A DNA stretch of 64,000 nt from Octopus sinensis (lineage: Eukaryota): NCBI RefSeq assembly GCF_006345805.1, contig NC_043026.1, forward strand, positions 12,379,579-12,443,578, read 5' to 3'. Positions 1-64,000 of this stretch are shown here, piece by piece. The translations under genes and the position numbers were made by a program. Position 1 is the first letter of the stretch; every line of letters begins with the position of its first letter. The notes under the pieces are model-generated. The model made no database searches. It was not told the origin of the DNA and saw only the letters and a program-made list of their open reading frames with translations.

Positions 1-237
1 ACTGGGTCGATGTAATCGACTTAATCCCTTTGTCTGTCCTTGTTTGTCCCCTCTGTCTTTAGCCCCTTGTGGGTATATATATATATATATATTCAAATAT
101 GAATTAGAAGCAACTCGGAACAAAATCGAACACACATACACAAGGTATGTGTTAGTTCGTGAGTCAGCTGCGGTTTTTAGGCGTAAGAGAATATATTCTC
201 TATGCCCCTGGTGTAAAAGACACCTGAAAGTAAGTCG

Positions 238-1115
<878 letters not shown>

Positions 1116-1788
1116 CATGTATGAATAGTGAAAGTAAATTCGTGAGAGTTGTCTTTCCTGGCGTAATAAATCCTATAATTTTTTTGATTTTTGTGTTTCG
1201 TGGTTCGTAACTTTTTTCCTGTTATTAATTTCTGTCAGAAATAAATGTAATATTCTAAATTAGCAATTAAAAACTATGTTGAACATAGAGAAATCGGACT
1301 CTGTTCAAACGGAAAAGCTTCCATTTCTGACACAGTTGTAACGATATTCTGTAATACTTAGCATATTTTTGTAAGTATTCTTGCTCAAGAACACAACACA
1401 GAGCCTGGTCTGGGAATCGAATTCACTACCTCATGATTGTGAGCCTGACACTCTAACCACTGCGCTATGCACCTTCTAATGTCTTATATGCAGTTTCTAA
1501 ATTGTAGTGTTGTTAGTTCTAAGCAAGTAAAGTAAAATCCCTAGCCGGGGACCAGAGTGGGAGGCTGTCCTCTCAACCAATACGTTGCTGTGGGTGCCAT
1601 TGGATGACGGACTCCCGTGGTGATGTTATTCCATGCTTTCCATTCATAGCACTGGTCTTAGCATGCTTGATGTTGAGGTGCTGTGACTTCATGTCTTCCT
1701 TAATTTGTTTTGCCCAGTTCTTCTAGATATCACGGAGATGTACTTGCATAGCAAGTGATTTGATCTGAGATCGTGTGCTGAAACGAAA

Positions 1789-1993
1789 ACAATTGCAGCG
1801 TGGAAGGTGTTTGTAAGCCATTTAAGAAACACACAAAAGCCGTTCGATTCAGCACGGATTTTTGTCAGTGAACAGGTCGCGGTCTTAAAGCGACGAAAAT
1901 GTTTTGACAAATTAAACTTAAATGTTGAAGTGAATCGAACGGCTTTTGTGTATTTCTTAAATGGCTTACAAACACCTTCAACGCTGCAATTGT
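1789..1993. repeat. Foldback element with ~63-bp inverted arms (MITE-like)
   Basis: 1789-1851 is the near-perfect reverse complement of 1931-1993. Confidence 0.75.
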
Positions 1994-2444
1994 CTTCTAG
2001 ATATCATAAACAACAAAATGTCACACACAAAAAGGTTTTTTTTTTTTTTAATACTGTGTATCACATATTTACATCATCATCATTTAATACCTCTTTTCCC
2101 AGCTTGCATGGTGAGACAAAATTTGTTGAGGCAAGTTATCGATGGTTGGATGTCTTAACACCTGTTTCTAAGCAAGTTAATATTTCCATAGTCTAAGGTG
2201 GTGAACTGGCAGAATCATTAGTATGCTTGGCAGCATTTCATCTGTCTGTACATTCTGGGTTCAAATTCTGCAGAGGTCAGCTTCACCTTTCATGACCAAT
2301 AAAATAAGTACCATATATACTCACAGATAGATCACACTTTTTTTACCAAAAATTTCAAGAAAAACCAAGATGCAACTTATCCACTCGACATCACAGGAAT
2401 TTGTAGATTGGCGTATCAGTAGTCCAGGCATGTACCCTGGACTT

Positions 2445-3026
2445 GACCATCCCTTAGTACAAGTACAAATATATGGGAAACTACCACCTGTATAATCTCT
2501 TGTGAAAGGTAGAAGAGTCCAGTTTGCTGGGCATTGTTGCTGAGCTGAAAATGAGGCAATTTCTCCTCTTCTCCTCTGGAAGCCATCTGCTCGCGATACA
2601 AGAGGGCGCACACTCTCCTACCCTGATGTAATCTCCAGGGATACAGGCATCCAGCAACAGGACCTCTGTAATGCTATGATGGAGCATGAAGTCTGGTGTA
2701 GCATAGTAAATTCCATCGTCTCGACCATGGTCGAACAATGATGATGATATATATATATACATACATACATATCATCTCTTGTGAAAGGTAGAAGAGTCCA
2801 GTTTGCTGGACATTGTTGTAGAGCTGAAAACGAGGCAATTTCTACTCTTCTCCTCTGGAAGCCATCTACTCGCAATACCAGAGGGCGCACACTCTCCTAC
2901 CCTGATGTAATCTCCAGGGATACAGGCATCCAGCAACAGGACCTCTGTAATGCTATGATGGAGTGTGAAGTCTGGCGTAACACAGTAAATTCAATTGTCT
3001 CGACCACGGTTGAACAATGATGATGA
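2445..3026 (+). mobile_element. Two adjacent 5'-truncated RTE/RTEX-like LINE 3' ends with (TGA)n tails
   Basis: Both encode KGRRVQFAGHCCRAE...WRN.VNSIVSTTVEQ and end in tgatgatga. Same family as 35700-36062. Confidence 0.8.
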
Positions 3027-3189
3027 GGCCTGGGCTTTTCAGTTTTGAAGTTGTTATGGAAACACTTTTGGGAAAACGAAAATTTGCATGATGGTCTTTT
3101 TGACAGCATCGATTCACTCCGATTTTTAGTTTTAAAATTTTAATAATTGTGAAAATATTTTAATATTTTTAAGTGAAGTTTTGAAATAA

Positions 3190-3640
3190 AGGCGCAGGAG
3201 TGGCTGTGTGGTAAGTAGCTTGCTTACCAAATGCCTAAATGGCAAATTATATAAAATAAAGTAGCTTGCTTACCAACCACATGGTTCCGGGTTCAGTCCC
3301 ACTGTGTGGCATCTTGGGCAAGTGTCTTCTGCTATAGCCTCAGGCCAACAAAAAGCCTTGTGAGTGGATTTGGTAGACGGAAACTGAAAGAAGCCTGTTG
3401 TATATATGTATGTGTGTGTATATGTTTGTGTGTCTGTGTTTGTCCCCCCACCATCGCTTGACAACCGATGCTGGTGTGTTTACGTCCCCGCCACTTAGCG
3501 GTTCGGCAAAAAGAGACCGATAGAATAAGTACTGGGCTTACAAAGAATAAGTCCCGGGGTCGATTTTCTCGACTAAAGGTGGTGCTCCAGGATGGCCGCA
3601 GTCAAATGACTGAAACAAGTAAAAGAGTAAAAGAGAGAGA
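3190..3640 (+). mobile_element. tRNA-derived SINE, family A
   Basis: Head ggcgcaggagtggctgtgtggtaag with B-box ggttcagtccc, then cttgggcaagt, an internal (TA/TG)n tract and tail gactgaaacaagtaaaagag. Further copies at 18528-18940, 20660-21055(-), 23925-24500(-), 41155-41300, 43470-43870, 60490-60860(-) and 62465-62606. Confidence 0.85.
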
Positions 3641-3929
3641 GAGTATTTGATAATATTTAACAAATATTAGTTATATTTATTTTAAATAGGGCCATGTAAC
3701 TTCCCAGATTATAGTGCAACCTATCTGCAAGTCAACTGCAAATACCTACTTTGACAACCTCAAATTAAGGGTGAGACCTATTCGCAAATATACCTGTACT
3801 AGTCAAGTACTGGGATTGGTGTAATTCACCTACCCCAACACCTGAAATTGCTGACATTGTGCTAAAATTTGAAATCAATATTTCCATAGTCTTACATGTT
3901 TATAACAGAAGACTGGAAACAAACAATGG

Positions 3930-4313
3930 TGGAAGCACTCCGTCGGTTACGACGACGAGGGTTCCGGTTGATCCGAATCAACGGAACAGCCTGCTCGTGA
4001 AATTAACATGTAAGTGGCTGAGCACTTCACAGACACGTGTACCCATAACGTAGTTCTTGGGGATATTCAGCGTGACACAGAGAGTGACAAGGCCGGCCCT
4101 TTGAAATACAGGTATAACAGAAACAGGAAGTAAGAGTGAGAGAAAGTTGTGGTGAAAGAGTACGGCAGGGATGACCACCACCCCCTGCCGGAGCCTCGTG
4201 GAGCTTTTAGGTATTTTCGCTCAATAAACACTCACAACGCCCGGTCTGGGAATCGAAACCGCGATCCTATGACCGCGAGTCCGCTGCCCTAACCACTGGG
4301 CCATTGCGCCTCC
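3930..4313 (-). mobile_element. tRNA-derived SINE, family E
   Basis: Minus-strand head ggaggcgcaatggcccagtggttagg...ggtttcgattccc. Related copies at 20355-20640, 37626-37895, 49792-50090 and 50114-50418. Confidence 0.8.
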
Positions 4314-5180
4314 ACAAACAATATTGCTTGTATGATGGTGATGCTCATTTACAAGCACCCCATGATGTTAAGACAAGGGTACACACATATATACATGCTT
4401 CTTTCAATTTCCATCAACCACTCAAATCCACTCAAAAGGTCAGCCCACAGCTATAGAAGAAGACACTTGCCCAAGGTACCGTTCACTGGGATTGAACCTA
4501 AAACCACATCATTGGAAATAAATTTCTGAGCTACATAGCCTTTCCCTGAGATTGAGAAATCTATCTTGAGAGGTAATCTTTATCCTCACTTAAGGTCATC
4601 ATCATCATCATCATCATCATCGTTTAGCGTCCGTTTTCCATGCTAGCATGGGTTGGACGGTTCAACTGGGGTCTGTGAAGCCAGCAGGCTTCATCAGGCC
4701 CAGTCAAATCTGGCAGTGTTTCTACGGCTGGATGCCCTTCCTAACGCCAACCACTCCGTGAGTGTAGTGGGTGCTTTTTACGTGCCAGGTATGGTTTATT
4801 GACAAACTGTTATCTTCTTTATTGTTCTAATTTCAGTATGTGCACAGCTGAAGCTAGCATAAAGTGAGATTCTTACAGCATGTATGTTTTCCAAGCAGAC
4901 CCCATTTAAGTACTAATTAGGCTTGGCATTCCTTAACTTTGGTGATCGGAAGAGAACCAATGTATGCAGTATGATATGGCCATAAGCCATGTCAAGTATC
5001 AAATATCAGCAAATTATATTCAAAATAACATTGAAAATCACTTTGGAGAAATGTGCAACTTTTATCTTGCATTGAGGAAGTTTGTGAATTCTGTACTTTA
5101 TGGTTGTGTCATTACAAGTTTTAGTTAGAAGTTCATCATCATCATTTAACATCCACTTTCCATGCTGACATGGGTTAGAC

Positions 5181-5854
5181 CAGTTAGTTTTCAACCAGGG
5201 TTCCGCCAGTACAGTCTAGGGGTTCCGCAAGAAGTTACAAAACTGCTAAAATTGGCAGTAATTTTTAATTCTCCTGTGCAGATATGTGTGCATAAGACTA
5301 TTAAATTATTGCACAGGGGTTCCTCGAGCCAGTGGAATGTTTCCTTGGGGTTCCGCTCCAGCAAAAAGTTTGAAAAGCACTGGTCTAACTGACTGTGTCT
5401 AACTCAATGGTTTTCAACCAGGGTTCCGTGGAACCCTAGGGTTCCGCCAGTACAGTCCAGGGGTTCCGCAAGAAGTTACAAAACTGCTAAAATCAGCAGT
5501 AATTTTTAATTCTCCTGTGCAGATATGTGTGCATAAGACTATTAAATTATTGCACAGGGGTTCCTTGAGCCAGAGGAATGTTTCCTTGGGGTTCCACTCC
5601 AGCAAAAAGGTTGAAAAGCACTGGTCTAACTAGTGTCTAACTAGTGTCTAACTCAGTGGTTTTCAACCAGGGTTTCCCCAGTCCAGTCCAGGGGTTCCGC
5701 AAGAAGTTACAAAACTGCTAAAATCGGCAGTACTTTTTAATTCTCCTGTGCAGATATGTGTGCAAAAGACTATTAAATTATTGCACAGGGGTTCCCCGAG
5801 CCAGTGGAATGTTTCCTTGGGGTTCTGCTCCAGCAAAAAGTTTGAAAAGCACTG
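5181..5854 (+). mobile_element. Trimer of a ~200-bp hAT-like MITE inserted in an RTE 3' UTR copy
   Basis: Each unit has cagtggttttcaa...ttgaaaagcactg ends. The whole trimer is flanked by a perfect 8-bp duplication, ggttagac (5173-5180, 5855-5862). Confidence 0.85.
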
Positions 5855-6207
5855 GGTTAGACAGTTTGATAAGCTGGAGAGCTGTACCAGGTTCCAGTCT
5901 GATTTAGCATGGTTTCTACAGCTGGATCCTTCCTAATGCCAACCACTCCAAGAGTATAATGGATGCTGTTTTACATGCCACTGACACAGTGTCATTTATA
6001 TGACACCAATAACAGCCACAACTACAATTTCCCAGGTGCCATTTACCTGATACTGGCAACGGCCATGACTACGGTTTCACTTGGTTTCATGAGACTTCTC
6101 AAGCACAGTATAACACTAAGTCTTGCTTATTTATTATCACCTTCATGAGGCCCAACATTTGAAGATCATGCTTCACCAACTTGTCCCTTACCTCTGTGAG
6201 GCCCATG

Positions 6208-6490
6208 TTCATCATCATCATCATCATCATTGTTTAGCGTCCGCTTTCCATGCTAGCATGGGTTGGACGGTTCAACTGGGGTCTGTGAAGCCAGAAGGCT
6301 GCACCAGGCTACAGTCTGATCTGGCAGTGTTTCTACAGCTGGATGCCCTTCCTAACGCCAACCACTCCGTGAGTGTAGTGGGTGCTTTTTACGTGCCACC
6401 AGCACAGGTGCCAGGGGAGGATGTCAAACAGCCACGGTCGGATGGTGCTTTTTACATGCCACCGGCACGGAGGCCAGGTGAGGCTGGCAC
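6208..6490 (-). mobile_element. 5'-truncated RTE LINE 3' UTR (family C) with (GAT)n tail
   Basis: Matches the tail of the LINE at 18985-20180. Other copies at 4597-4790, 11085-11540, 21410-22075, 26489-26970, 28045-28636, 36222-36640, 50740-51020, 51088-51408, 59160-59770, 60978-61260 and 63310-63482. Confidence 0.85.
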
Positions 6491-7383
6491 TGAGTTCAAA
6501 TTCTGTGGAGGTCAACTTTGCCTTTCATCCTTTTGGCATTGATAAAATAAGTACCAGTGGAACACTGGTGGTGGTGGTGGTGGTGGTGGTGTGTGTGTGT
6601 GTGGGGGGGTGTAATCGACTTGGTTCCTCCCTTGAGATTAATGATCTTCTGCCAAAATTTCAAACTATTATTATTACTACTAAGGTGGTGTGCTGGCAGA
6701 ATCGTTAGCTCACTGGGTAAATTAATTAGTGGCATTTCCTTTGTCCTTACGTTCTGAGTTCAAATTCCACGGAGGTCAATTTCGCTTTTGATCCTTTTGG
6801 GATTGATGATATAAGTACCAGTTATACACTGGGGTCGATGTAGTCGAATTACTCCTCCCACCAAAAAACAAGAGTTTAAAGGACCAGTAATGATAAGGCT
6901 GTTGACTGGGAGAACACAAACATGGTTTAACCCTTTTGATACTAACCCGGCCAAAACCGGCTCTGGCTCTGTTGTATAAATGTCTTGTTTTCATAAGTTT
7001 TTCTTTAAAATATACCACCAAACCTTAGTCACAATTTATGATCCTAACACTAGCTTCACTCACGGAGTGGTTGGCGTTAGGAAGGGCATGAAACAAATAA
7101 TAAAATTATATAAATCTAAACCAGAACAAAAATCATTTCCTTCATTTTATATATACCGAATATAAAAGAAAAAGATTATACACAAGATACATGACAAAAT
7201 GTATATAAGATGCAAAATATAAAAATCCTATTATGGTACACAATATTTTATTTTCTAGCTTTTTTATCTGTTGTTTCAAGTCATTAGACTGCGGCCATGC
7301 TGGGGCACTGCCTTGAAGAATTTGTATTCGAAAGAAACGATCCCAGTACTTTGTTTTTGTTAAGCCTAGGTACTTATTCTATC

Positions 7384-7970
7384 TGTGGCGAGCTGGCAGA
7401 AACGTGAGCACACCGGGCGAAATGCTTAGCAGTATTTCGTCTGCCGTTACGTTCTGAGTTCAAATTCCGCCGAGGTCGACTTTGCCTTTCATCCTTTCGG
7501 GGTCGATAAATTAAGTACCAGTTATGCACTGGGGTCGATGTAATCGACTTAATACCTATGCCTGTCCTTGTTTGTCCCCTCTGTTTAGCCCCTTGTGGGT
7601 AGTAAAGAAATAGGTATTTTGTCTGCTGCTGTTACGTTCTGAGTTCGACTTTGCCTTTCATCCTTTCGGGGTCGATAAATTAAGTACCAGTTACGCACTG
7701 GGGTCGATGCAATCGACTTAATACCTATGTCTGTCCTTGTTTGTCCCCTTTGTGTTTAGCCCCTTGTGGGTAATAAAGAAATAGGTATTTCGTCTGCCGT
7801 TAAATTCTGAGTTCAAATTCCACCGAGGTCAACTTTGCCTTTCATCCTTTCGGGGTCGATAAATTAAGTACCAGTTATGCACTGGGGTTGATATAATCAA
7901 CTTAATCCCTTTGTCAGTCCTTGTTTGTCCTCTCTGTGTTTTAGCCCCTTGTGGGTAATAAAGAAATAGG
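7384..7970 (+). mobile_element. tRNA-derived SINE, family B, multimer (one head, three bodies)
   Basis: Head ggcgagctggcagaa and B-box gagttcaaattcc. The central gtcgactttgcctttcatcctttcggggtcgataaa domain resembles the MetaSINE domain (from memory). Flanked by the 17-bp direct repeat taggtacttattctatc. Confidence 0.85.
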
Positions 7971-8256
7971 TACTTATTCTATCAGTTTTTTTCTCCAAAA
8001 CCGCTAAGTTATGGGGTCGTAAACACATCAACGCTGGTTGTTAAGCAGAGGTGGGGAACACTGTGGGCCTTTTTCAGTTTCTGCCTACCATGTCCACTCA
8101 CAAAGCTTTGGTCAGCCCAAGACACTTACTCAAGGTACCATGCAGTGGGCTTGATCTGCATTTGATGAATGAATTTCAGTAAGGAAGCTCATTAAAGGCT
8201 GCAGATTTTCATGAATTCTTTTCATGGTCCATATGTTAAAGTTTCTCCTTGTAGAC

Positions 8257-9190
8257 CAGTGGTTTTCAAGCAGGGTTCCGCCAGTACAGTCCAGGGGTTC
8301 CGCAAGAAGTTACAAAACAGCAAAACGTCCTCTCTCCTGTGTGAATACGTATGTGTACTGTAAGGTTACCTTTCCGAGAGAAAGACTTTTTACAGATATC
8401 ACAGTGGTGTGATGGTCTTTCTATATCTTTTGATCTCTCATCAATAAAATTAATCCCTTGAGGCTGCGATTTACACTTAACTTTCTTATTATATAATTCA
8501 TTTTCCATATTTTTCCTTTTCTGATTACAATAGACCAGTGGTTTTCAACCAGGGTTCCGCCAGTACAGTCCAGGGGTTCCGCAAGAAGTTACAAAACTGC
8601 TAAAATCGGCAGTAATTTTTAATTCTCCTGTGCAGATATGTGTGCATAAGACTATTAAATTATTGCACAGGGGCTCCCCGAGCCAGTGGAATGTTTCCTT
8701 GGGGTTCTGTTCCAGCAAAAAGATTGAAAAGCACTGGTCTAACTAGTGTCTAACTCAGTGGTTTTCAACCAGGGTTCCGCCAGTACAGTCCAGGGGTTCC
8801 GCAAGAAGTTACAAAAATGCTAAAATCGGCAGTAATTTTTAATTCTCCTGTGCAGATATGTGTGCATAAGACTATTAAATTATTGCACAGGGGCTCCCCG
8901 AGCCAGTGGAATGTTTCATTGGGGTTCTGCTCCAGCAAAAAGATTGAAAAGCACTGGTCTAACTAGTGTCTAACTGACTGTGTCTAACTCAGTGGTTTTC
9001 AACCAGGGTTCTGCCAGTACAGTCCAGGGGTTCTGCAAGAAGTTACAAAACTGCTAAAATCGACAGTAATTTTTAATTCTCCTGTGCAGATATGTGTGCA
9101 TAAGGCAATTAAATTATTGCACAGGGGTTCCCCGAGCCAGTGGAATGTTTCCTTGGGGTTCCGCGCCAGCAAAAAGTTTGAAAAGCACTG
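8257..9190 (+). mobile_element. Composite hAT-like element: MITE left end, ZNF fragment, MITE trimer
   Basis: Left TIR at 8257 and ~201-bp units at 8536-8736, 8756-8956 and 8990-9190. Flanks ttgtagac and gtgtagaa match at 6/8. Confidence 0.7.
8319..8508 (-). pseudogene. Truncated C2H2 ZNF gene fragment: start codon, leader and finger 1
   Basis: [60 protein letters not shown], then fused to MITE sequence. Confidence 0.9.
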
Positions 9191-9419
9191 GTGTAGAATA
9201 TGAACGTGGAATGCTGACATCCATATGCCTCCACATTCATACTCTACAAGGAGAAACTTTAACATATGGACCGTGAACAGAATTCATGAAAATCTGCAGC
9301 CTTTAAAAAAAGCTGCCATTCATCAAATGCAGATCAAGCCATTATAGAAGCAACAGGAATTTTAAAATACCTAAATGTTTTGGTTAGAGCTTTTTCATTA
9401 CATTATGCCTCATGTAAGC

Positions 9420-9640
9420 TCTGTCTGCGACGATTTCATCTCAATCGAAGGAGAGGGGCTTTCTCCGTCCAGGCTGCGGATCCGTGGAATAAGATGCCAA
9501 CGGCCGCTTGGTTCAAAGTCTCCCTTGACCACAAATGGCCTGAACTCTTTACATGAACACCACCCTGTACATAACTCCATGTCCCCCTACATGGCCTTGC
9601 TTTTTGCTTTTTGAGCCAAAAAATTAACTATCTAACTAAT
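9420..9640 (+). mobile_element. CR1-like LINE 3' end
   Basis: Encodes RRGAFSVQAADPWNKMP...FKVSLDHKW and ends in a taac-type tail. A second copy lies on the minus strand at 52897-53020. Confidence 0.65.
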
Positions 9641-9799
9641 TAATTTTCAGTCAAATTTAGAGCAATCTCAAAAAATTAGTGTAGTTGAAGTCAATGAATA
9701 TATAGCAGATTTCAAAACTGCTATTTAAGAAATACGGTACTCAAAGTATTGTGAGAATCCTTCAAGCAAAGGAATGTGTGACTGCAGATGTGTTGATAT

Positions 9800-10195
9800 A
9801 ATAATAATAATAATAATAATTGTGTACAGTGCTCAGGTGCACTACAACTCATCTAAAGTGCATATATAATCAGGTGTAGTTTCGGCGGATTTCGGAAAGC
9901 ACGAGGGCCTTAAAGGATGCAGTGTCATGGCAGTCAACAACTGACGCAGGCAGTTTGTTCCATGCTTCAGCAACTCTGAACGTGAAAAAATGTTTCCGAA
10001 AGTCATGGGAGCTGTGTTGTTTTCTGACTTTGTAGGCATGTCCACGTGTGTTGGACACATGGAGATCAAAAAGGTGTTCAATGTTGTTGTTGGTGAGGTG
10101 GTTGATAACTTTGTGGGTGTTTACCAAGTCCGTCGCCAGACGCCGGAGCTTCAGTGAATCCATGCCCAGGGAAACAAGGCGCTCCTTGTTTGGAC
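9800..10195 (-). mobile_element. CR1-clade LINE 3' end (ORF2 C-terminus with (ATT)n tail)
   Basis: KERLVSLGMDSLKLRRL...TRGHAYKVRK...FFTFRVAEAWNKLPASVV matches the CR1 ORF2 C-terminal signature. Confidence 0.85.
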
Positions 10196-10536
10196 AGATA
10201 TTCTTCCACTAAACACTTAATAGGTGCTAAATTATTCAACAAGAGAAGCATCACTAGTTTTAAGAATGAACTTCCAACAGAAGAGAGAGTACTGACCACT
10301 GAAGGATATTTACTTGTACTTGTGGCGGCATTCACCCTGGGCGGGTTGAGTCGGCTTCTTTCACCACCCTCGAGACATTGTATTCGCCATTGAGAATTCA
10401 TGGAAGAAGTTTCGTGGGAATATGTGGATTTCACAAGCGGTCCCCATCAATCCCGCATGTAGAGACATCCTGTTTGCCGCAGATTGTCCGCAGACGCAGG
10501 GGAAGAACGACCGAGGAGCCACCGGTTGCCGAAACA

Positions 10537-10910
10537 GACACTCCGAGGATTTTCACCAGAGCCCCCTGTCTGCTGGGTTGTGGCCCTAATACCACTTGGT
10601 GTCAGACCAATACGCCTTGGGTGGCCCTACCAGGAACCGAAGTTCCCGACAGCACAGCTCTGACACTACCCATTGCCAGCGTCACCACCACAGTGAGGAG
10701 GGTATGGACTTTGGGGACGCAAACAGACACTCTGAGGATTTTCACCAGAGCCCCCCGTCTGCCAGGTTGTGGCCCTAATACCACTTGGTGTCAGACCAAT
10801 CCACCTTGGGTGGCCCTACCAGGAACCGAAGTTCCCAATGGCATAGCTCTGACACTACCCGTTGCCAGCGTCCCCACCACGGTGAGGAGGGGATGGACTA
10901 AATGACACCG
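10537..10910. repeat. Two tandem copies of a 189-bp GC-richer unit
   Basis: gacactccgaggattttcaccagagcc recurs 189 bp later, seen as a 63-aa repeat in ORF 10378-10905. Confidence 0.8.
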
Positions 10911-11980
10911 AAGGATATCCCATGATTGACAAAGAAAAGCTTGAAACTGAACTCAAAGTATTCTATTGTAGATCCGATATGCATGAATATTGCAAATTAA
11001 TTGAGCTGCTGAAATTTATCTAGGAAAATAACCTAGATGGTGTTCTTAGTGAAATTATGAAATAAATAAAATCCTCTTGACAATTTCCAGCGCCACCCCG
11101 ACAGGCCTCTGTGCAGGTGGCATGTAAAAAGCACCATCCAATCGTGGTCATTTGCCAACCCCATCAGGCCTCCGTGCCGGTGGCACATAAAAAGCACCAT
11201 CCGATCGAGACCATTTGCCAACCTCGCCTGGCCCCCGTGCCAGTGGCACATAAAAAGCACCATACAATCGTGGCCGTTTGCCAGCCTCGTCTGGCACATA
11301 AAAAGCACCATCCGATCGTAGCCATTTGCCAGCCTCGTCTGGCATCTGTGCAGGTGGTACGTAAAAAGCACCCACTACACTCACGGAGTGGTTGGCGTTA
11401 GGAAGGGCATCCAGCTGTAGAAACACTGCCAGATCAGACTCTGCCTGCTGCAGCCTTCTGACTTCCCAGACCCCAGTTGAACCGTCCAACCCATGCTAGC
11501 ATGGAAAATGGACGTTAAACGATGATGATGATGATGATGAATTTCCATGACTGCATCAGATGCAGAACACTGCTTTTCAACACTGAAAAGAATGAAATCT
11601 TTTCTAAGGAGTACTATGAATCCTAGAAGACTAAATGTACTTGCAGTGCTTTCAACGGAGAAAAATTTCCTCAACAGTAATCCTGGGACCAAGGGAAAAA
11701 ATTAGTAACCTCTTCACTCAAAGTAAAACAAGAAGAGCAGATTTCATTTTTAAATGAATGAATGAATCTTAAACTGTAACAATTTATTAATAAGTATAAA
11801 ATAATTTTTTCGTTTAGGATTTTATCAAGTTTATGTATAAATTTTCTTTTTATGTGTTTGTTTCGTTTTACACAAAATTAAAACAATGGCAGAACAATTT
11901 TCTGAATCAGCACCCCTATTAATTTTAGCCACAAGCCACCACTGATTATCAATTATATTAACGAAACTGGAAGGATAAAT

Positions 11981-12911
11981 GGATCTTTTCGGTTTGACCG
12001 GCAGTTTTTTAAAATAATTTCCACGTAACTAAACACTTTTAAACTTCGCATACTGGTAGAATGTGTTTATAAAACACCTTTTTCTCTTGGCTTTATTGAG
12101 AAAATTCTATAGTTTGTAAGATATTTGTTGTTGCTTTTTCTTCAATTTCTGCAATTTCAACCAATCAATGAATCGATGACATCTATATTGAGGTGAAAAC
12201 AGGATCTTTTCCTTTTGAACGGCACATTGTAACATAATTTCTAGGTAACTAAAAAGTTTTAAACTTCGTATACTGGTAGAATGTGTTTATAAAACATCAT
12301 TTTTTTCTTGGTTTTATTGAGAAAATTCTATAGTTTGTAAGATATTTGGGATCTTTTCACTTTGACCGGCAGATTTTTTAATAATTTCCACGTAACTAAA
12401 CACTTTTAAACTTCGTATACTGGTAGAATGTGTTTATAAAACATCATTTTTTTCTTGGTTTTATTGAGAAAATTCTATAGTTTGTAAGATATTTGGGATC
12501 TTTTCACTTTGACCAGCAGATTTTTTAAATAATTTCCACGTAACTAAACACTTTTAAACTTCGTATACTGGTAGAATGTGTTTATAAAACATCTTTTTCT
12601 CTTGGCTTCATTGAGAAAATTCTGTAGTTTGTAAGATATTTGTTGTTGCTTTTTCTTCAAGTTCTGCAATTTCAACCAATCAATGACGTCTATTGAGGTA
12701 AAAAAACATTCTGTGCCGTATGAATATGTCCCTCGTTTAACAAAACAGATTGGGTTTATTTTACACTTCTGAAGAAAAAAAAGATACCCTTCCTCCACCC
12801 CTAACCCTAAAACAGATTGAAATGCAATAGATCAATACTAGGGTCATAATTACGGGTGACAATTTCATATGACACTGCTAGAAAAAACTACTGTTCAAAC
12901 CGAAAAGATCC
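11981..12911 (+). mobile_element. Merlin-like MITE family M1 (~410 bp) with about four stacked left ends
   Basis: TIR ggatcttttcggtttgaNcggcagtttttt; flanks ggataaat/agataaat match at 7/8. Confidence 0.75.
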
Positions 12912-12975
12912 AGATAAATTAAATAGTAGACCTGCTGTGGTCTATTTCTCACAAACCAGATTGATATTGAAACAG

Positions 12976-13827
12976 TTACTCTTTGGTATGAATGCCAGAA
13001 TGTCTAATTAAATGACACTTTTGAGAGAATGATTTACCACAGATATCACAATGATATGGTTTTTCTCCTGTATGAATACGCGTGTGTTTTGTTAAATTAC
13101 TTGACATAGAGAATGATTTACCACAGATGTCACAGTTATATGGTTTCTCCCCCGTATGGATGAGTTTGTGAGTATTTAAGTGATGGTTTGTTGAGAATGA
13201 CTTATCACAGATATCACAGTGATATGGCTTCAATCCTGTGTGAATGTATTTATGAGCAGTTAAGTTAGCATTTCCAGAGAAGGATTTACCACAGATATCA
13301 CAGTGATATGCCTTCTCTCCTGTATGGATGCGGTAGTGTCTAGCCAAGTTGTTAGTTTGGGAGAATGATTTACCACAAATATTGCAGCGATATGGTTTCT
13401 CTCCTGTATGAATACGTATGTGTTTGGTTAAGTCATTACTCCCATAGAATGATTTAGAACAAATGTCACACCGGTATGTTTTCTCTGAAGTATGGATACA
13501 TTTATGAGTCGTGAGATTACCTTCATCAGAAAATGTCTTACCACAGATATTACAGTGATATGGTTTCTCTTCCGTATGAATACGTACATGTTTTGTTAAA
13601 TCAGTAATGCTAAAGAATAATGTAGCACATATATCGCATTCATATCGTTTCTCTGCAGTATTAATACATTTGTGAGCTGTAAGGCTACTTTCTTCAGAAA
13701 ATGATCTATCACAGATATTACAGTGATATGATAACGCTTCATTCTCTTTTTTTATATCATCGGGAAAACCAATTCTTTCAGACTGCACGTTACATTCAAC
13801 TTTATCTCCACACAATTCATTTTCCAT
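12976..13827 (-). CDS. C2H2 zinc-finger protein, gene 1 (283 aa; 8 intact fingers, 1 degenerate)
   Basis: Open frame of tandem CxxC...HxxxH fingers with TGEKP-type linkers. The ATG of MENELC at 13827 is preferred over the upstream TTG. Splice acceptor at 14085-14086. Confidence 0.93.
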
Positions 13828-14084
13828 AATGTTTTTCTCTATTTCCAAAATAAACAGATGTTATCACTTCTCTCTTATTTTAACTGCTATATTCACATCA
13901 ACTGTGTTTGTTCCTGATGTCTGATGCTGTAAACTTCTTTGTCACCCAAGTTCAGAACTATTTCACTGTAATTCACGACAGATTTACATAAACAGGGTTA
14001 TATGTAATTTGTGGTCTAAAAAATTTTTAGTCTTTAAAAGATGATAAATATTGATGTTCTTTAATGCCAATGTCAGCTGATTTT

Positions 14085-14100
14085 CTGAAATAAGAGAGAA
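14085..14100 (-). promoter_or_regulatory. Splice acceptor of the gene 1 coding exon
   Basis: ttttctctcttatttcag|aaaatcagc. Homologous acceptors at 26300(-), 32591(+), 53183(-), 56678(+) and 63263(+). Confidence 0.7.
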
Positions 14101-14282
14101 AAAACAGTATAGGATGTAATAAATACTTAAGAAGTAGAGATACAACATTGGAAATTTTAGTACATATCTATAATAAGCAGAATTTCTTTTGTAGTTTGGT
14201 ATAAAAACAGTGACATCTATATTGATCCACTGTTTACATCTGGAAACAGTAAGCTGATATATGTGCTTTAAGGTTGTAAATA

Positions 14283-15145
14283 TCCTCATCATCATCGTTT
14301 AACGTCCGTTTTCCATGCTAGCATGGGTTGGACGGTTCGACCGGGGTCTGGGAAGCCAGAAGGCTGCACAAGGCTCCAGTCTGATCTGGCAGTATTTCTA
14401 CAGCTGGATGCCCTTCCTAACGCCAACCACTCCGTGAGTGTAGTGGGTGCTTTATACATATATATATATATACATCATCATCATCATCATCGTTAAACGT
14501 CCGTTTTCCATGCTAGCATGGGTTGGACGATTCGACCGGGGTCTGGGAAGCCAGGAGGCTGCACCAGGCTCCAGTCTGATCTGGCAGTATTTCTACAGCT
14601 GGATGCCCTTCCTAACGCCAACCACTCCGTGAGTGTAGTGGGTGCTTTATACATATATATATATACATCATCATCATCATCATCGTTAAACGTCCGTTTT
14701 CCATGCTAGCATGGGTTGGACGGTTCGACCGGGGTCTGGGAAGCCAGGAGGCTGCACAAGGCTCCAGTCTGATCTGGCAGTATTTCTACAGCTGGATGCC
14801 CTTCCTAACGCCAACCACTCCGTGAGTGTAGTGGGTGCTTTATACATATATATATATATACATCATCATCATCATCATCGTTAAACGTCCGTTTTCCATG
14901 CTAGCATGGGTTGGACGGTTCGACCGGGGATCTGGAAAGCCAGGAGGCTGCACAAGGCTCCAGTCTGATCTGGCAGTGTTTCTACAGCTGGATGCCCTTC
15001 CTAACGCCAACCACTCCATGAGTGTAGTGGGTGCTTTTTACGTGCCACCGGAGCTGGCAACGCCCACGATCGGTTGGTGCCTTTTACGTGCCACCGGCAC
15101 AGAAACCAGTCAAGATGGCGCTGGCATCGACCACGTATTGATTTC
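14283..15145 (-). repeat. Four tandem copies (~194 bp) of the RTE 3' end
   Basis: The same junction, gggtgctttatacatatata...catcatcat, occurs three times. Confidence 0.85.
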
Positions 15146-15439
15146 GAACAACGTCGTCAAAACATTTGTATATATCGATAAGAGGAAACAAAAACAAAAA
15201 AAAAAAACAAAGAAAAAAACTGTGGTCACCGAGAATTCAATAGTAGCAACAAAAGTTTAATATTAACAGATATATCTTCGTCATAGATTAACTCTGTAAT
15301 ACTCACGGAAATGTTTTATAAAGGATATTATTACAACAATGCGTGGTACGGGGCTGCGAGACCAATTTCATAAAAAGTAACACAAAGGTTGAAAAAATTG
15401 TGGACTGTGATAAAGTAACAGATTATACATCCACCCACA

Positions 15440-15466
15440 CACGCGTATGTATATATATATGTGTGT

Positions 15467-15513
<47 letters not shown>

Positions 15514-15656
15514 GAGAGAGAGATGTATATACATATGTGTGTATATATATATAGAGAGAAAGAGAGATATGTATATACATATGTGTATATATATATAGAG
15601 AGAGAGAAAGAGAGATATGTATATACATGTGTATATATATATAGAGAGAGATATAT

Positions 15657-15702
<46 letters not shown>
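15440..15702. repeat. Compound (TA)/(GA)/(TG) microsatellite
   Basis: Directly visible. Confidence 0.9.
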
Positions 15703-16238
15703 ATATTGGTAAAAACGGTAAGATAACAATAGAAAGAAAGAGACCTCAATATTATGTAAATAGAGGAAATTTATCCGTAATTATAATATGTGACAATTAT
15801 TCGGTAGCCAAGATAAAACTCAGAGTTTCGGATGCCGAGGTGGAAATCCACAACACCATCTCAGAGTTTCATCTTGGCTACCGAATAATTGTCACCTATT
15901 ATTTTACATATAGTTGTAGAGAGGTTATGGGTGTCTGGCTTTATGAGCCTGACGTGTCGCCTACGCAGCACAGAGCTTTATAGGTGCGAAATTACTGGTC
16001 AGTCTATGACCGGCCATAACAATAAACTGCCTTAATATATATATATATGTGTATATATATGTATATGTAGGTCCCGGGTTGAGTCGGGGTTAACCACAGT
16101 AAATAAGGTACTCAATACATAGCAGAGTAAAGTAATTTATTTTATAGAAGGAGCTTCTACAGGACTATTTCATCTGAATGAAACAGTTCTAGTCCTGTAG
16201 CTCTAGCTCCTTCTATAAAATAAATATGTATATATGTG

Positions 16239-16284
<46 letters not shown>

Positions 16285-16344
16285 GTGTGATCGGTAACAA
16301 TTACAGTTTGATCGATAATTTTTAAACAATGCGATGTTCGATTA

Positions 16345-16505
16345 GGATTCTTACCTTGTCAGAATTGAATTTTCATGGAGCTGGAATTCGATATCGGGGA
16401 ATAATAGAGTGTAAAGTCGAAAGTCTACGCGGCCCAAAAACGTCAACAACACAAGGGCTGGAGCTACACAACGGAAGAGGGAAATCGGTGGTACTGCGCA
16501 TGCGT
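16345..16505 (-). promoter_or_regulatory. Putative promoter and non-coding first exon of gene 1
   Basis: NRF1-like ACGCATGCGCAGT (16493-16505, minus strand), nearby cggaag, locally raised CpG and donor aag|gtaagaatc at 16354. A further donor, ttcc|gtgagt, lies at 15306. Confidence 0.5.
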
Positions 16506-16582
16506 ATCTAATATTTAATTTATGTAAGGGAAGACAATTCTTAGCTTTCATTACTGTAACTTTTAGTTTCAGTATATATATT

Positions 16583-17508
16583 TCTTTATTGCCCACAAGG
16601 GGCTAAACAAGGGGACAGACAAAGGGATTGAGTCGATTACATCGACACCAGTGCGTAACTGGTACTTAATTTATCGACCTCGGCGGAATTTGAACTCAGA
16701 ACTTAGTGGCAGACGAAATACCTATTTCTTTTCTACCCACAAGGGGCTAAACACAGAGGGGACAAACAAGGATAGACAAAGGGATTAAGTCGATTACATC
16801 GATCCCAGTGCGTAACTGGTACTTATTTAATCGACCCCGAGAGGATGAAAGGCAAAGTCGATCTCGGCGGAATTTGAACTCAGAACGTAGCGGCAGACGA
16901 AATACCTATTTCTTTACTACCCACAAGGGGCTAAACACAGAGGGGACAAACAAGGATAGACATAGGTATTAAGTCGATTACATCGATCTCAGTGCGTAAC
17001 TGGTACTTATTTAATCGACCCCGAGAGGATGAAAGGCAAAGTCGATCTCGGCGGAATTTGAACTCAGAACGTAGTGGCAGACGAAATACTTATTTCTTTA
17101 CTACCCACAAGGGGCTAAACATAGAGGGGCTAAACAAGGACAGACAAAGGGATTGAGTCGGTGACATCAATCCCAGTGCGTAACTGGTACTTAATTTATC
17201 GACCTCGGCGGAATTTGAACTCAGAACTTAGTGGCAGACGAAATACCTTTTTCTTTACTACCCACAAGGGGCTAAACACAGAGGGGACAAACAATGACAG
17301 ACAATGGGATTAAGTCGATTACATCGACTCCAGTGCGTAACTGGTACTTAATTTATCGACCCCGAAAGGATGAAAGGCAAAGTCGACCTCGGCGGAATTT
17401 GAACTCAGAATGTAAAGGACGAAATACCTATTTCTTTACTACCCACAAGGGGCTAAACACAGAGGGGACAAAGGGATTAAGTCGATTACATCGACCCCAG
17501 TGCGTAAT
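16583..17508 (-). mobile_element. Family B SINE body multimer (about 5-6 units)
   Basis: Repeated ~150-185-bp units. Similar arrays at 32990-33578, 39589-40014, 41810-42146 and 53840-54190; near-monomers at 27395-27605, 28950-29185 and 39080-39312. Confidence 0.85.
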
Positions 17509-17647
17509 TATATATTAACCGAAAATAAAACACTTCTAACTTGAAAAAAAAAATAATAAATAAATATGACAATTTATTTGAAAGTTTTCAGAAGAAAAAG
17601 AAAACAAAATTTAAAAGTTTGTGATTAGTTCATGGCGAAACTATTTC

Positions 17648-18072
17648 GGCAATCTTTCGTCTCTAGTAGACCTTTCCGTCGATTTCCGTAAAAAACTTCT
17701 ATTTTTTTTACATATGGGCTTGCGGGAACTTTTGAAGTAATGAGAGCGAAAAAGACTAAGAGAAAGCGATTGTATGACGAGGGAAGTTCTTTTGAAGTTA
17801 CCGTGCATGGGAAGCATTGATGTACATGTGTGTGTGTGTGTGTGTTTGATGGGGTGTGGGAGACAGACAGTATGTTGTGTAAGTGAAGTGCTTCCGTTAG
17901 TGTGTGTGAAGAGACAGAGTAATGTGTGAAAGAAAGAGATAACTGAAATTTTTTACTCGGTGTATGTGTATATGTATGTATATTACTTCAAAAGTTCCCG
18001 CAAGCCCATATGTAAAAAAAAATTTTTTTTACGGAAATCGACGGAAAGGTCTACTAGAGACGAAAGATCGCC
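17648..18072 (+). mobile_element. Merlin-like MITE family M2 with ~90-bp TIRs
   Basis: ggc(a/g)atctttcgtctctagtagacc... at both ends. Near-identical to 40302-40729. Confidence 0.75.
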
Positions 18073-18984: not shown

Positions 18985-20180
18985 GGTACAAGTAGGGGTT
19001 CACTAAGGATCAGTCCAATAGCAGAGGAATTAAGTTGGGCTGTACCTGGGAGCTCCTCTATGCTGATGACCTTGTTCTTATAGCTAAATCATTACCAGAA
19101 CTAGTTTGAAGAGTGGAAGCAAGATCTAGAATCAAAGGGCCTTAGAGTTAATATAGCTAAAAACCAAAGTTTTGATAAGCTGGGAAGTGGACAAATCACA
19201 AATCCCTTCGGATAGATGGCCCTGCTTGATATGTAGAAAAGGCATAGGTAGAAACTCCATAAGGTGTACCTGGTGCAAGCTATAGACTCATAAGAGGGGC
19301 AGGAATATCAGAGGTAGGTTAACAGGGAGAATAGTCTTTGTGTGTGGCAGATGCACAGGTACAATAAACACTAGAAATATACAAAAAATAGACTCCATCA
19401 AATGCCAGGTGGGGATTTCTAGAAGTAATTGATAACTTCTGTTATCGTGGTGACCAAGTCAGCAGTGGAAGTGGATGCTCTGAGAGTGTAGCTGCTAGAA
19501 TAAGACTAGACTGGGCAAAGTTCAAAGAGCTTCTACCTTTGTTGGCAACAAAGTGCCTCTTCCTCAGAGTGGAAAGCAGATTGTATGATGCCAGTTTGCA
19601 AACAGTTGTGTATGGGCTGTGACCATTAGAGGACATGCAAAGGCTTGCTAGGAATGAAGATTGTATGCTTCAGTGAATGTGCATGTAAGACAGAGTGTAA
19701 GCATTTTGAGAGAGAAACTGGGTATAAGAAGCATCAGATGTAGTGTACGAGACATGACTGCACTGATATGGTCGTGCGATGTGCATGGACAAGGACAGAT
19801 GTATAAAGAAGTGCTGATGTCAAACTGAGGGGAGAACCTGTGGAAGAGGTGGACTCAGGAAGACCTGGGATGAGGTGATGAAGCATGATTTTGGCATGAT
19901 AGGCCTCATAGAGGCAATACCAAATGACCGAGACCTTTGGCGATATGCTGTGCTTGAAAAGACTCGTCAAGCCACATGAACTCATAGTTGTGGCCTATAT
20001 CAATGGCACATAGAAAAAATAGCACCCATAATACTCTCAGAGTGGTTGATGTTAGGAAGGGCATCCAGCTGTAGAAACTCTGCCAAAACAGACAAGAACT
20101 TGGTGCAGCTCCCCAGCTTACCAGTTCCAGTCAAACTGTCCAACCCATGCCAGCATGAAAAGTGGACAGTAAATGATGAT
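18985..20180 (+). mobile_element. Degenerate RTE-clade LINE (RT domain through 3' tail)
   Basis: Frameshifted translation gives WELLYADDLVLIA, LESKGLRVNIAK, NFCY.GDQVSSG.G and DRDLWRYAV, continuous with the family C UTR and gatgat tail. Confidence 0.85.
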
Positions 20181-22325
20181 GTATTTGTGTCTGTGTTCTT
20201 TTCCCCACCACCACATTTTGAAAACCGGTGCTGGTGTGTTTATGTTCCTATGACTTAATGGTTCGGTAAAAGAGACCAATAGAATAAGTACTGAGATTGA
20301 TATTGGCAACCTTTCTGTCTCGGGAGACAATGGAGTTGCGCATGTTTTTTTTGTTTTTTGTGGACTTGCGGTTATAGGATCGTGGTTTCGATTCCCAGAC
20401 CGGGCGTTGTGAGTGTTTATTGAGCGAAAACACCAAAAGCTCCACGAGGCTCTGGCAGGGGATGGTGGTGATCCCTGCTGTACTCTTTCACCACAACTTT
20501 CTCTCACTCTTTCTTTTGTTGGCCTGCTCGCTTAACCATCAGGGTGGCGTCATTTGAAGGCTAAAAAACAATGCGAAGCACATTGTGACCAGCGATGTGT
20601 AGCAACATCTGATAGTTTGGTCGATCACGGTGATATAAATATATACACATGTGTGTTTACTCTTTACTCGTTTCAGTCATTTGACTGCAGCCATGCTGGA
20701 GCACCGCCTTTAGTCAAGCAAATCGACCCCAGGACTTATTCTTTGTAAGCCCAGTACTTATTCTATTGGTCTCTTTTGCCGAACCGCTAAGTGACGGGGA
20801 CGTAAACACACCAGCATCGGTTATCAAGCAATGCTAGGGGGACAAACACAGACACACCCACATATATATATATATATATATACATATATACGACAGGCTT
20901 CTTTCAGTTTCCGTCTACCAAATCCACTCACAAGGCTTTGGTCAGCTCGGGCCTATAGCAGAAGACACTTGCCCGAGATGCCACGCAGTGGGACTGAACC
21001 CGGAACCATGTGGTTGGTTAGCAAGCTACTTACCACACAGCCACTCCTGCGCCTATGTGTTTGAGAGAGATAGTCTACTTGTCTTGACATTGCGTTGCAA
21101 GAACATGCCTAGCCATGGAGAAATATTACCTTGCTTGGGAGCAGGTGAGGGTTAGTGACAGGAAGGGCATCTGGCTGCAGAAAATCTACCTTAAGAAACT
21201 TTGACTCCTGCAAGCTTGGAAGAAGGACGTTACAACGATGATGATGATGATGATACCAACATGGCTGTAGCCAAACATGATCATCAGCTCTGAGACATCA
21301 AGTACCAGTATGGAAGACAGAAGATTTGCAGGATGATCACACTGCAAATTACTCAACCAGTTGGGATTTTGTAGGAACAACAAAGAAGACGGCCTCATCA
21401 TCTACGAGTTGTCATAGAAACAGCTGCAAAATAGTTTTAGATGAAGAAGAAAATCAAAATCGAAATCGATCAACATCAATGGAAATTGTAGCTGTGATAC
21501 TAGTGCCGGTGGCACGTAAGAGAACCATCCGAACGTGGCCGTTGCCAGTGCTGCCCCGCCTGGCCTCCATGCTGGTGGCATGTAAAATGCACCATCCGAT
21601 CGTGGTCGTTTGCCAGCCCCACCTGGCCTCCGTGCTGGTGGAACGTAAAAAGCACCATCCGATCGTGGCCGTTGCCAGCCCCGCCTGGCCTCCGTGCTGG
21701 TGGCACATAAGAGAACCATCCGAACGTGGCCGTTGCCAGTGCTGCCCCGACTGGCCTCCGTGCTAGTGGCACGTAAAATGCACCAATCCGATCGTGGCCG
21801 CTTGCTAGCCTCGTCTGGCACCTGTGCAGGTGGCACGTAAAAAGCACCATCCGATCGTGGCCGTTTGCCAGCCCCGCCTGGCACCTGTGCAGGTGGCACG
21901 TAAAAAGCACCCACTACACTTAGAATAGTTGGCATTAGGAAGGGCATCCACCTGTAGAAACACTGCCAGATCAGACTGGGCTTGGCGCAGCCTTCTGGCT
22001 TCCCAGACCCCAGTTGAACCGTCCAACCCATGCTAGCATGGAAAACGGACGTTAAATGATGATGATGATGATGATGAAGAATGAGCCATGGGTGTTTGCT
22101 ACTGGAACGGAAGTCTGGACTAGATGAAACCCAGCAAGGTTGAGTGTGCTCAATATTGAAGGAGGCACCACTTGGTCCTTGGATGCCTTTAGTAGAGTTT
22201 ATTCTGTTGCCAACATTCAAACCAAGTTTGTGGTCTTCAGATGATTTACTACCCCAGTTTACTAACCCCGTTCAAAACTATCAAAGTGTGAGATAGAATG
22301 TGAAAAAGTTGAAGTCAAAAGATTT

Positions 22326-63751: not shown

Positions 63752-64000
63752 CAGTGCTTTTCAACATTTTTGCTGGAGCGGAACCCCAAGGAAACATTCC
63801 ACTGGCTCGAGGAGCCCCTGTGCAATAATTTAATAGTCTTATGCACACATATCTGCACAGGAGAATTAAAAATTACTGCCGATTTTAGCAGTTTTGGTAA
63901 CTTCTTGCGGAACCCCTGGACTGTACTGGCGGAACCCTGGTTGAAAACCACTGAGTTAGACACAGTCAGTTAGACACTAGTTAGACCAGTGCTTTTCAAT
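63752..64000 (-). mobile_element. Start of another hAT MITE multimer
   Basis: Unit 63752-63953, 33-bp spacer, next unit from 63987. Confidence 0.85.

Follow-up and report, generated by a model that had tools for sequence, protein, structure and literature searches.

How did the beginning of a zinc-finger gene come to lie between the two ends of a MITE, and did the resulting block ever move? The question is raised by positions 8257-9190 of an octopus C2H2 zinc-finger (ZNF) cluster. A preliminary description answered it with a Pack-type hAT element that had captured its ZNF piece some 55 kb away and carried it to its present site, a DNA-transposon route for the spreading of ZNF modules. Taken as a whole, that interpretation stands as far as the Pack-type element and a plausible nearby donor are concerned, whereas the composite need not have moved, the claim on the junction was wrong and the spreading route is unsupported. 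All positions are given in coordinates of the window, i.e. the whole 64 kb stretch of DNA that was analyzed; the range covered consists of the window and a 35.6 kb orthologous locus of Octopus vulgaris.

The region is a tandem ZNF cluster with many repeats. Five intact single-exon ZNF ORFs, which have a MENELCED-type leader in common, are found in the window:

12976-13827, minus strand: intact single-exon ZNF ORF z1
25386-26174, minus strand: intact single-exon ZNF ORF z2
33857-35413, plus strand: intact single-exon ZNF ORF z3
51749-52522, minus strand: intact single-exon ZNF ORF z4
57056-57919, plus strand: intact single-exon ZNF ORF z5, the fifth gene

The O. vulgaris locus (OX597841.1:3711348-3747001) is the orthologue of window positions 1-18072 in reverse orientation, with 92-98% identity, and was used as an independent second assembly carrying the composite; by this measure the window stems from a close relative or from another individual of O. 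vulgaris. An exact look-up of 17 window ORFs in the protein collection found none of them present. In a search with the full z5 protein vertebrate zinc-finger proteins dominate, and an octopus orthologue is absent among the matches listed. A look-up of contigs that encode this protein gave no record.

The block itself has a length of 934 bp and is bounded by both ends of one hAT-like MITE family. Together with its flanks, which are read as the two copies of a target-site duplication (TSD), it is composed of the following parts:

8249-8256, plus strand: left TSD copy TTGTAGAC, the same 8-mer in O. vulgaris
8257-8331, plus strand: MITE left end, truncated (unit positions 1 to ~75), 68 nt of it at 95.6% to the full unit
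8332-8508, minus strand: captured ZNF coding piece with ATG, 33-residue leader, finger 1, linker and the start of finger 2
8509-8527, minus strand: ZNF 5' leader of 19 nt, taatcagaaaaggaaaaat, colinear with the z5, z3 and z1 leaders
8528-8535, minus strand: internal 8-mer gtctattg (CAATAGAC on the plus strand), adjoining the trimer
8536-8736, plus strand: MITE unit C, a full unit
8737-8755, plus strand: array spacer of 19 nt between units C and B
8756-8956, plus strand: MITE unit B, a full unit
8957-8989, plus strand: array spacer of 33 nt between units B and A
8990-9190, plus strand: MITE unit A, a full unit whose right TIR ends at 9190
9191-9198, plus strand: right TSD copy GTGTAGAA (TTGTAGAA in O. 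vulgaris), from comparison of the flanks

The outline drawn in the preliminary description, with MITE TIRs at 8257 and 9190 and a MITE trimer that ends in the right TIR, is confirmed by this anatomy. The left TIR CAGTGGTTTTCAAGC at 8257-8271 and the right TIR at 9176-9190 (reverse complement CAGTGCTTTTCAAAC) match the family TIR CAGTGSTTTTCAAYC, from which each deviates by one mismatch, and the trimer consists of the units C, B and A.

A ZNF leader, an ATG and finger 1 had also been reported from inside the block, and they are found there on a minus-strand ORF. The ATG is located at 8508-8506 and finger 1 at 8341-8409, followed by the linker HTGE and then R-T/P-F-C-C. Pfam zf-C2H2 matches residues 34-56 of the fragment ORF as a complete finger (29.4 bits versus a cut-off of 25.2), and the Pfam double-domain match reaches residue 65. 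The frame continues open into the MITE up to a stop at 8266-8268, which gives 80 aa; this ZNF read-through is the only ORF in the 934 bp, and no transposase was found inside the block. Leader and finger 1 are homologous to the five window ZNF genes at 68-82%, and the fragment shares 76% identity with z5 (176 nt), 81% with z2 (133 nt) and 99% with O. vulgaris. Against protein databases the sole match of the fragment ORF is P0001, a 74-aa 'hypothetical predicted protein' of O. vulgaris, which is the O. vulgaris orthologue of the captured fragment itself. With the 65-aa fragment as query, an exhaustive HMMER scan gave a list swamped by multi-finger proteins and was uninformative. A 31-mer of leader plus ATG had zero matches in metagenomes. 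Judged by its sequence features, namely TIRs of one family at both ends, a TSD, a piece of a host gene and no transposase, the block 8257-9190 is a Pack-TIR, and the earlier classification as a Pack-type hAT element is upheld on the same features.

The MITE unit has a length of ~201 nt and the ends CAGTGGTTTTCAACC ... GATTGAAAAGCACTG. CAGTG on both sides fits the short TIRs of hAT elements, which begin with 5'-YARNG, the TIRs are complementary at 13/15 positions, and in the DNA fold of one unit the ends are paired (z = -2.65). The TIR pattern of the family is matched 17 times in the window, with 0.71 matches expected; 14 of the 17 fall in three arrays and the solo left end at 8257. The units mutually align at 93-98%. 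No solo full unit with a TSD of its own was found in the window; the full units all stand in arrays, and it is the array that is flanked by the TSD. The ordinary comparator for the composite is the following array:

5181-5854, plus strand: trimer array of three units, with a perfect 8-bp TSD GGTTAGAC in its flanks (5173-5180 and 5855-5862)

This trimer splits a SINE-like repeat, and 18 other window copies of that repeat cross the site uninterrupted. Whole MITE arrays insert as one unit with an 8-bp target-site duplication, and in the window the array of 2-3 units, not the single MITE unit, behaves as the mobile entity of this family. The 8-bp duplication and the CAGTG ends fit the hAT superfamily, so that the family appears to be hAT-like and non-autonomous; its TIR presumably resembles hAT-Charlie ends. 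No hAT transposase was found among the window ORFs of at least 150 aa. When three target sites are compared with the hAT consensus nTnnnnAn, TTGTAGAC agrees at both positions, and in GGTTAGAC and CAATAGAC the A at position 7 is the sole agreement. A nature of the MITE as an RNA-derived SINE was rejected, since searches for tRNA and Rfam matches gave none and both TIRs and an 8-bp TSD are present.

GTCTAACT 8-mers linked through AGT or GACTGT make up the spacers, which are 19, 22, 30 or 33 nt long. The array at 5.2 kb has three units in the window versus two in O. vulgaris. The array of the composite reads C, 19-nt spacer, B, 33-nt spacer, A in the window and C, 33-nt spacer, A, 22-nt spacer, D in O. 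vulgaris, where D is a fourth unit with a 22-nt deletion. Units B and C are 98.5% identical, and window unit A is the orthologue of the second O. vulgaris unit (98.5%). Because unit number and spacers vary between orthologues, a shared spacer and a shared trimer count are weak evidence for a donor.

Whether the block is an insertion at all can be read from its surroundings, which form a palindrome that the preliminary description had overlooked:

8148-9340, no strand: host palindrome with inverted repeats I1 and I2, which received the insertion

The left arm is made up of 8148-8248 and 9199-9217, the loop lies at ~9218-9223 and the right arm at 9224-9340. With 8257-9198 deleted in silico the left arm reads ...AAAGTTTCTCCGTGTAGAATATGAACGTGGA, and the right arm, as reverse complement ...AAAGTTTCTCCTTGTAGAGTATGAATGTGGA, is colinear with the rejoined left arm straight across the site. 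The second arm of the palindrome thus serves as an 'empty site', from which the target is read as TTGTAGA(A/G). The flanks TTGTAGAC and GTGTAGAA agree at 6/8 positions, as given in the preliminary description (chance P = 0.0042 by our calculation), and those of O. vulgaris (TTGTAGAC and TTGTAGAA) at 7/8 (P = 0.00038).

As excision of 8257-9198 restores the palindrome arm, we are dealing with a genuine insertion rather than a segmental duplication. In a repeat-rich tandem ZNF cluster a segmental duplication, an assembly artefact or a resident ZNF pseudogene that was later flanked by independent MITE insertions has to be considered, and we regard all of these as extremely unlikely. Both borders lie exactly at TIR ends with a TSD, which together with the regenerated arm argues against any such origin. 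Homology of the flanks outside 8257-9190, which had been named as the mark of ordinary segmental duplication, is absent: the similarity to the 63.7-kb locus discussed below has a score of 16 outside the block versus a shuffle mean of 17.8, and the homology ends at the outer TIR of the array. The structure recurs in the independent O. vulgaris assembly, so that an assembly artefact is excluded. An inversion between two oppositely oriented arrays was rejected as well, as the composite is flanked by both halves of the palindrome.

The left junction shows where MITE and gene were fused. Read against the paralogues and the MITE, it is located within ~8326-8345. On the gene strand the paralogues read CACACAGGAGAGAAACCATAT..TGT, corresponding to HTGEKPYxC, and the fragment reads CACACAGGAGAGAGG(C/A)CGTTTTGCTGT / TTTGTAAC..., followed by the MITE; translated, the O. 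vulgaris sequence is HTGERPFCC, and in the window its P is replaced by T. The preliminary description had let the fragment end near the 9-mer tctcctgtg (8333-8341), but the ZNF frame runs ~18 nt further, with a canonical E-R-P-F-x-C beyond the 9-mer. The left MITE ends at about position 75, ahead of the MITE's own copy of the 9-mer (unit positions 89-97). Along the gene strand, a canonical HTGERPF-x-C is followed by the switch to the MITE at a GT microhomology; the exact microhomology is these 2 nt, inside an imperfect patch of 11/14. The similarity between MITE and ZNF, the 9-mer included, is at chance level, with 179 of 300 shuffles scoring as high. For this reason a MITE with an older ZNF-derived segment was rejected, as was a guiding role of the 9-mer at the junction, past which the ZNF frame goes on.

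The next question is that of the donor. The genes z1-z5 were rejected, as the best of them are only 76-82% identical to the fragment. A candidate is found at the right end of the window:

63500-63743, plus strand: upstream region of a ZNF family gene, ~200 nt colinear with the z5 upstream region, with the coding part expected past the window end
63744-63751, plus strand: gtctattg, read as the upstream TSD copy of the candidate donor array, which it directly precedes
63752-64000, minus strand: candidate donor array, oriented with respect to the gene as in the composite, running off the window

Both z5 and z1 have upstream regions homologous to the flank 63500-63751 (score 69 against z5, shuffles 20.9 +/- 2.9). 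The array is composed of unit Y (63752-63953), a 33-nt spacer (63954-63986) and the first 14 nt of the next unit, and it interrupts the ZNF upstream region at gtctattg, ~20 nt before the expected ATG; at this very 8-mer the homology of the fragment begins. The earlier observation that gtctattg both adjoins the trimer of the composite and precedes this array is borne out (8528-8535 as reverse complement, and 63744-63751). At the same leader site the paralogues have gtatattg (z5), gtgtattg (z3) and gtttattt (z1), and the gtctattg of the composite is native ZNF leader, which we read as a TSD copy of the donor array that was carried along. Joined at gtctattg, the 63.7-kb flank and the fragment form a chimera that is colinear with z5 from ~200 nt upstream through the ATG; the two loci are therefore complementary halves of one order, i.e. 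upstream region, 8-mer, array, 8-mer, leader and ATG. z5 is the best paralogue for both the 63.7-kb flank and the fragment.

Because 8-mer, orientation and leader position are the same, the gene at 63.7 kb, or a close relative, is a credible candidate donor on sequence grounds. The value of the 8-mer has a limit: the target sites of the family (GGTTAGAC, TTGTAGAC, CAATAGAC) share ...TAGAC, so that the 8-mer may partly reflect target preference, and its coincidence by chance would be roughly 1 in 64 if ...TAGAC is preferred, versus 1 in 65,536. The array units contribute less. The 33-nt spacer is identical at both loci (8957-8989 as reverse complement and 63954-63986), as had been stated, though with coordinates that were off by one, unit Y having a 1-nt insertion. 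Differences at several sites between the corresponding units had been conceded as well, and unit A and its positional counterpart Y differ in 12/202 aligned columns (~94-95% identical); Y and C are 97.5% identical, and unrelated family copies are 93-97% alike. As all identities between loci amount to 93-97%, the units hold no donor-specific signal, and unit-by-unit identity was rejected as a donor identifier.

The same limits leave room for another paralogue as donor, one in which an array occupies, or formerly occupied, the homologous position in the leader, by descent or by independent insertion; we consider this possible but doubtful. It would account for an identity of merely 94-95% between A and Y in a family whose spacer types recur and change between orthologues and whose target sites share ...TAGAC, and the window ZNF genes are tandem paralogues with leaders alike. 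A database search with a MENELYNKK leader profile also found this leader in no annotated octopus protein except P0001, the fragment's own orthologue. Against a different paralogue stand the identical 8-mer, orientation and leader position at 63.7 kb, the common best paralogue z5, the deviating 8-mers of the remaining window paralogues and the same-chromosome bias of gap filling, which favours a nearby donor. With the 63.7-kb gene as donor, the sequence past the array is predicted to read CCACTG / gtctattg / taatcagaaaaggaaaaatATG, with the leader gtctattgtaatcag...ATG and an ORF that, under template switching, would continue onward as ...GAGAGGCCGTTTTGCTGT.

For the origin of the composite we favour in-place gap repair of a resident array, copied from the array of the donor, to which we give about an even chance. 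The composite holds, inside its own ends, an inner full MITE end, gtctattg, the leader, the ATG, finger 1 and the start of finger 2, and this order can be derived in four steps. The resident array at the 8.5-kb site would have suffered a break or an excision gap, and the broken end would have invaded the homologous array in the ZNF leader, 55 kb off on the same chromosome. Synthesis would then have passed through and beyond the end of that array and copied, after the TSD 8-mer and the leader, the ATG with ~195 coding nucleotides, until the new strand was rejoined to the resident left end at the 2-nt exact (11/14 imperfect) microhomology. The composite itself need never have moved. The 55-kb transposition of the preliminary description is thus not required, as a single repair event in a resident array yields the same product in fewer steps.

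The competing account would have the composite built at the donor, from the leader array and a second MITE end in the gene, and then transposed over 55 kb into the palindrome. The block has correct left and right ends in proper relative orientation and a TSD at its new site, multi-unit arrays of the family do move whole, and the terminal unit in the window is preceded by a 33-nt spacer, which mirrors the array at 63.7 kb. Multicopy Pack-TIRs that were mobile after template switching are documented (PMC8277862). On the other side, the left MITE breaks off at ~75 and passes straight into the gene with no TSD of its own, so that transposition requires an extra insertion and deletion, or else template switching at the donor locus. 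A second copy of the composite was not found in the ~100 kb covered (window and O. vulgaris locus, which hold one orthologous copy). The terminal order of the array also differs in O. vulgaris (C, 33-nt, A, 22-nt, D), and for this reason the resemblance to the end of the donor may be secondary. One repair event, compared with a second MITE insertion, a deletion and a jump, favours in-place repair, and we hold transposition of the composite to be possible but the less probable course. If repair took place in a resident array, the terminal unit D of O. vulgaris might be a remnant of the resident element; window unit A has one D-like site near its right end, where the same state is that of the family majority.

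The composite and its junction are the same in the window octopus and in O. vulgaris, with differences at 3/279 positions in 8257-8535, and the capture event is therefore older than the split from O. vulgaris. Both octopuses have an open 80-codon frame, at a divergence too low for a test of constraint. In the gene model of P0001 the first exon (ATG...KSFSRK) has its splice site at a GT within the finger and is followed by two small exons, the second of which stops 61 nt short of the next ZNF gene's ATG. This chimeric transcript may be real or an artefact of gene prediction. To judge from its sequence, the composite is most likely an inert gene relic, which possibly provides a chimeric transcript with an alternative first exon; the copy looks old and single, and is probably inert.

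The spreading of ZNF modules by a DNA-transposon route, as proposed in the preliminary description, finds no support in a copy that is single, predates the O. vulgaris split and holds a single finger. Octopus ZNF biology gains little from one old one-finger relic of which no spread is seen. A wider reading, in which leader MITE arrays act as homology bridges through which ZNF starts are copied repeatedly to new sites, give rise there to new first exons or chimeric transcripts and have a share in the C2H2 expansion of cephalopods, we regard as very unlikely. The splicing of P0001 toward the next ZNF gene would be one case of it. Should many array-bounded ZNF starts exist genome-wide, a connection with the C2H2 expansion of octopus would be worth testing. 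The composite is of significance as a clean and unusually legible cephalopod case of the capture of a gene fragment by a DNA transposon.

The proposed mechanism is that of the gap repair of P elements in Drosophila, where gaps are repaired from ectopic templates and internal-deletion derivatives with 'filler' sequence are formed. Break, ectopic strand invasion, preference for the same chromosome, template switching and rejoining at microhomology are the points of likeness. The octopus case differs in that it concerns a hAT-like family and an ancient event, and that its mechanism is deduced from sequence only.

The array that carries the ZNF piece has its own counterparts. DINE-TR1/Tetris in Drosophila and the pearl-type elements of bivalves belong to the tandem arrays and satellites that stem from MITEs or hAT elements. 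The likeness consists in MITE-sized head-to-tail units and a unit number that shifts by unequal crossover. Unlike these satellites, the octopus array is short (2-3 units) and is still one transposable unit with its own 8-bp TSD.

Plant Pack-MITEs, Pack-MULEs and Pack-CACTA elements are often multicopy and demonstrably mobile, with several gene fragments each. The octopus composite shares with them the TIR boundaries, the non-autonomous nature and the gene fragment inside; it differs by its one known copy, its one fragment, its superfamily and its animal host. Pack-MULEs were reportedly described by Jiang et al. in 2004.

The capture of gene fragments by TIR transposons is a known kind of event in animals, to which a cephalopod example is added on the strength of the features described above. 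A survey of animal Pack-TIRs reported 370 cases, 208 of them hAT (Tan et al. 2021, Nat Commun 12:4280, PMC8277862). Octopus and molluscs are mentioned neither in that survey nor in its accessible supplements (PMC8277862), and a search of the literature for zinc-finger capture by hAT elements or MITEs in octopus found nothing specific. According to the survey, single-copy Pack-TIRs result mostly from transposition-independent gap filling, the parent lies on the same chromosome in 59.8% and the median microhomology is 2 bp, and multicopy Pack-TIRs are explained by template switching followed by transposition (PMC8277862). One of its examples, Pack-hAT-N8_XT of Xenopus tropicalis, carries 291 bp of the CAPSL 5' UTR (PMC8277862). 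The octopus composite resembles these elements in being non-autonomous, of a type like hAT, the one mostly represented, and single-copy within the ~100 kb covered, with a short piece of a host gene, a TSD, a parent (here a candidate) on the same chromosome, ~2 nt of breakpoint microhomology and possible chimeric transcription. With this pattern of a single copy, the same chromosome and a 2-nt microhomology the case fits the single-copy animal Pack-TIRs and gap filling.

Two differences set it apart from the animal Pack-TIRs. The carrier is a tandem MITE array and not a single element, and only one breakpoint lies at a microhomology, the other being inside true homology. As an array of this MITE family also stands in the candidate donor gene, the copied filler includes an inner TIR and the donor's TSD 8-mer, and this retained inner end with its 8-mer points to the origin of the copy. 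It suggests that copying began by homology inside a sister element, and in this respect the octopus composite bears on the question how Pack-TIRs are formed.

The MITE family that bounds the composite, the block at 8257-9190 enclosing a zinc-finger (ZNF) gene fragment, also forms a trimer at 5.2 kb, the host of which is a SINE-like repeat. The features concerned are listed by window position.

5173-5862: MITE trimer of the composite's family, flanked by an 8-bp target-site duplication, GGTTAGAC, whose two copies match perfectly
5383-5404, 5624-5653, 8737-8755, 8957-8989 and 63954-63986: spacers between MITE units
8148-8248 and 9199-9340: palindrome of about 210 nt hosting the composite, loop at about 9218-9223

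In the O. vulgaris counterpart of this trimer (about 12990-13445 of the orthologous locus L001) the first unit and the left copy of the duplication are deleted. The spacers, with lengths of 19, 22, 30 and 33 nt, consist of the 8-mer GTCTAACT linked via AGT or GACTGT. The reverse complement of this 8-mer, AGTTAGAC, resembles the target sites GGTTAGAC, TTGTAGAC and CAATAGAC of the family, which hints either that the arrays grew via insertion beside target-site copies already present, or that ...TAGAC targets are favoured by the family.

At the right boundary of the composite (9190-9192) GCACTG is directly followed by GTGTAGAA, whereas O. vulgaris has GCACTT followed by TTGTAGAA (L001, about 9336-9338); the two sequences differ here by two adjacent substitutions, located exactly on the border between TIR and duplication. 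The arms of the host palindrome are 83-97% complementary, and no further copy of it was found in the window or in L001. It is possibly another foldback or MITE-like element.

In the annotated gene model of the O. vulgaris protein P0001 (L001:10001-25654) the ATG...KSFSRK exon of the ZNF fragment is joined to two further exons, one at about 19572-19601 and another at about 25589-25654. This last exon stops 61 nt short of the start codon (ATG) of a downstream ZNF gene of 256 aa. Either P0001 represents a chimeric transcript, or the model is an artefact of gene prediction.

The window also contains several tandem repeats.

45495-48282: 147-bp satellite, 19 copies, 97% identity
12202-12642: 3-copy array of the 147-bp unit, near the ZNF gene z1
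11095-11344, 21503-21911, 26651-26974, 28060-28467, 44510-45254, 51090-51234 and 59332-59497: recurring minisatellite, about 62-63 bp (GGCACGTAAAAAGCACCATCCGATCGTGGCC...)
55247-55814: array of a 71-nt repeat

The minisatellite sits inside a dispersed repeat and gives rise, in several reading frames, to long ORFs that are spurious. The ZNF gene z4 is followed, immediately 3' of its stop codon, by two minus-strand occurrences of CAGGGGTTCTCAACC (51473-51487 and 51699-51713, spaced 226 nt). The match of CAGGGGTTCTCAACC to the MITE TIR at 13 of 15 positions suggests a related element family, and the 71-nt array possibly represents a further family of this type.
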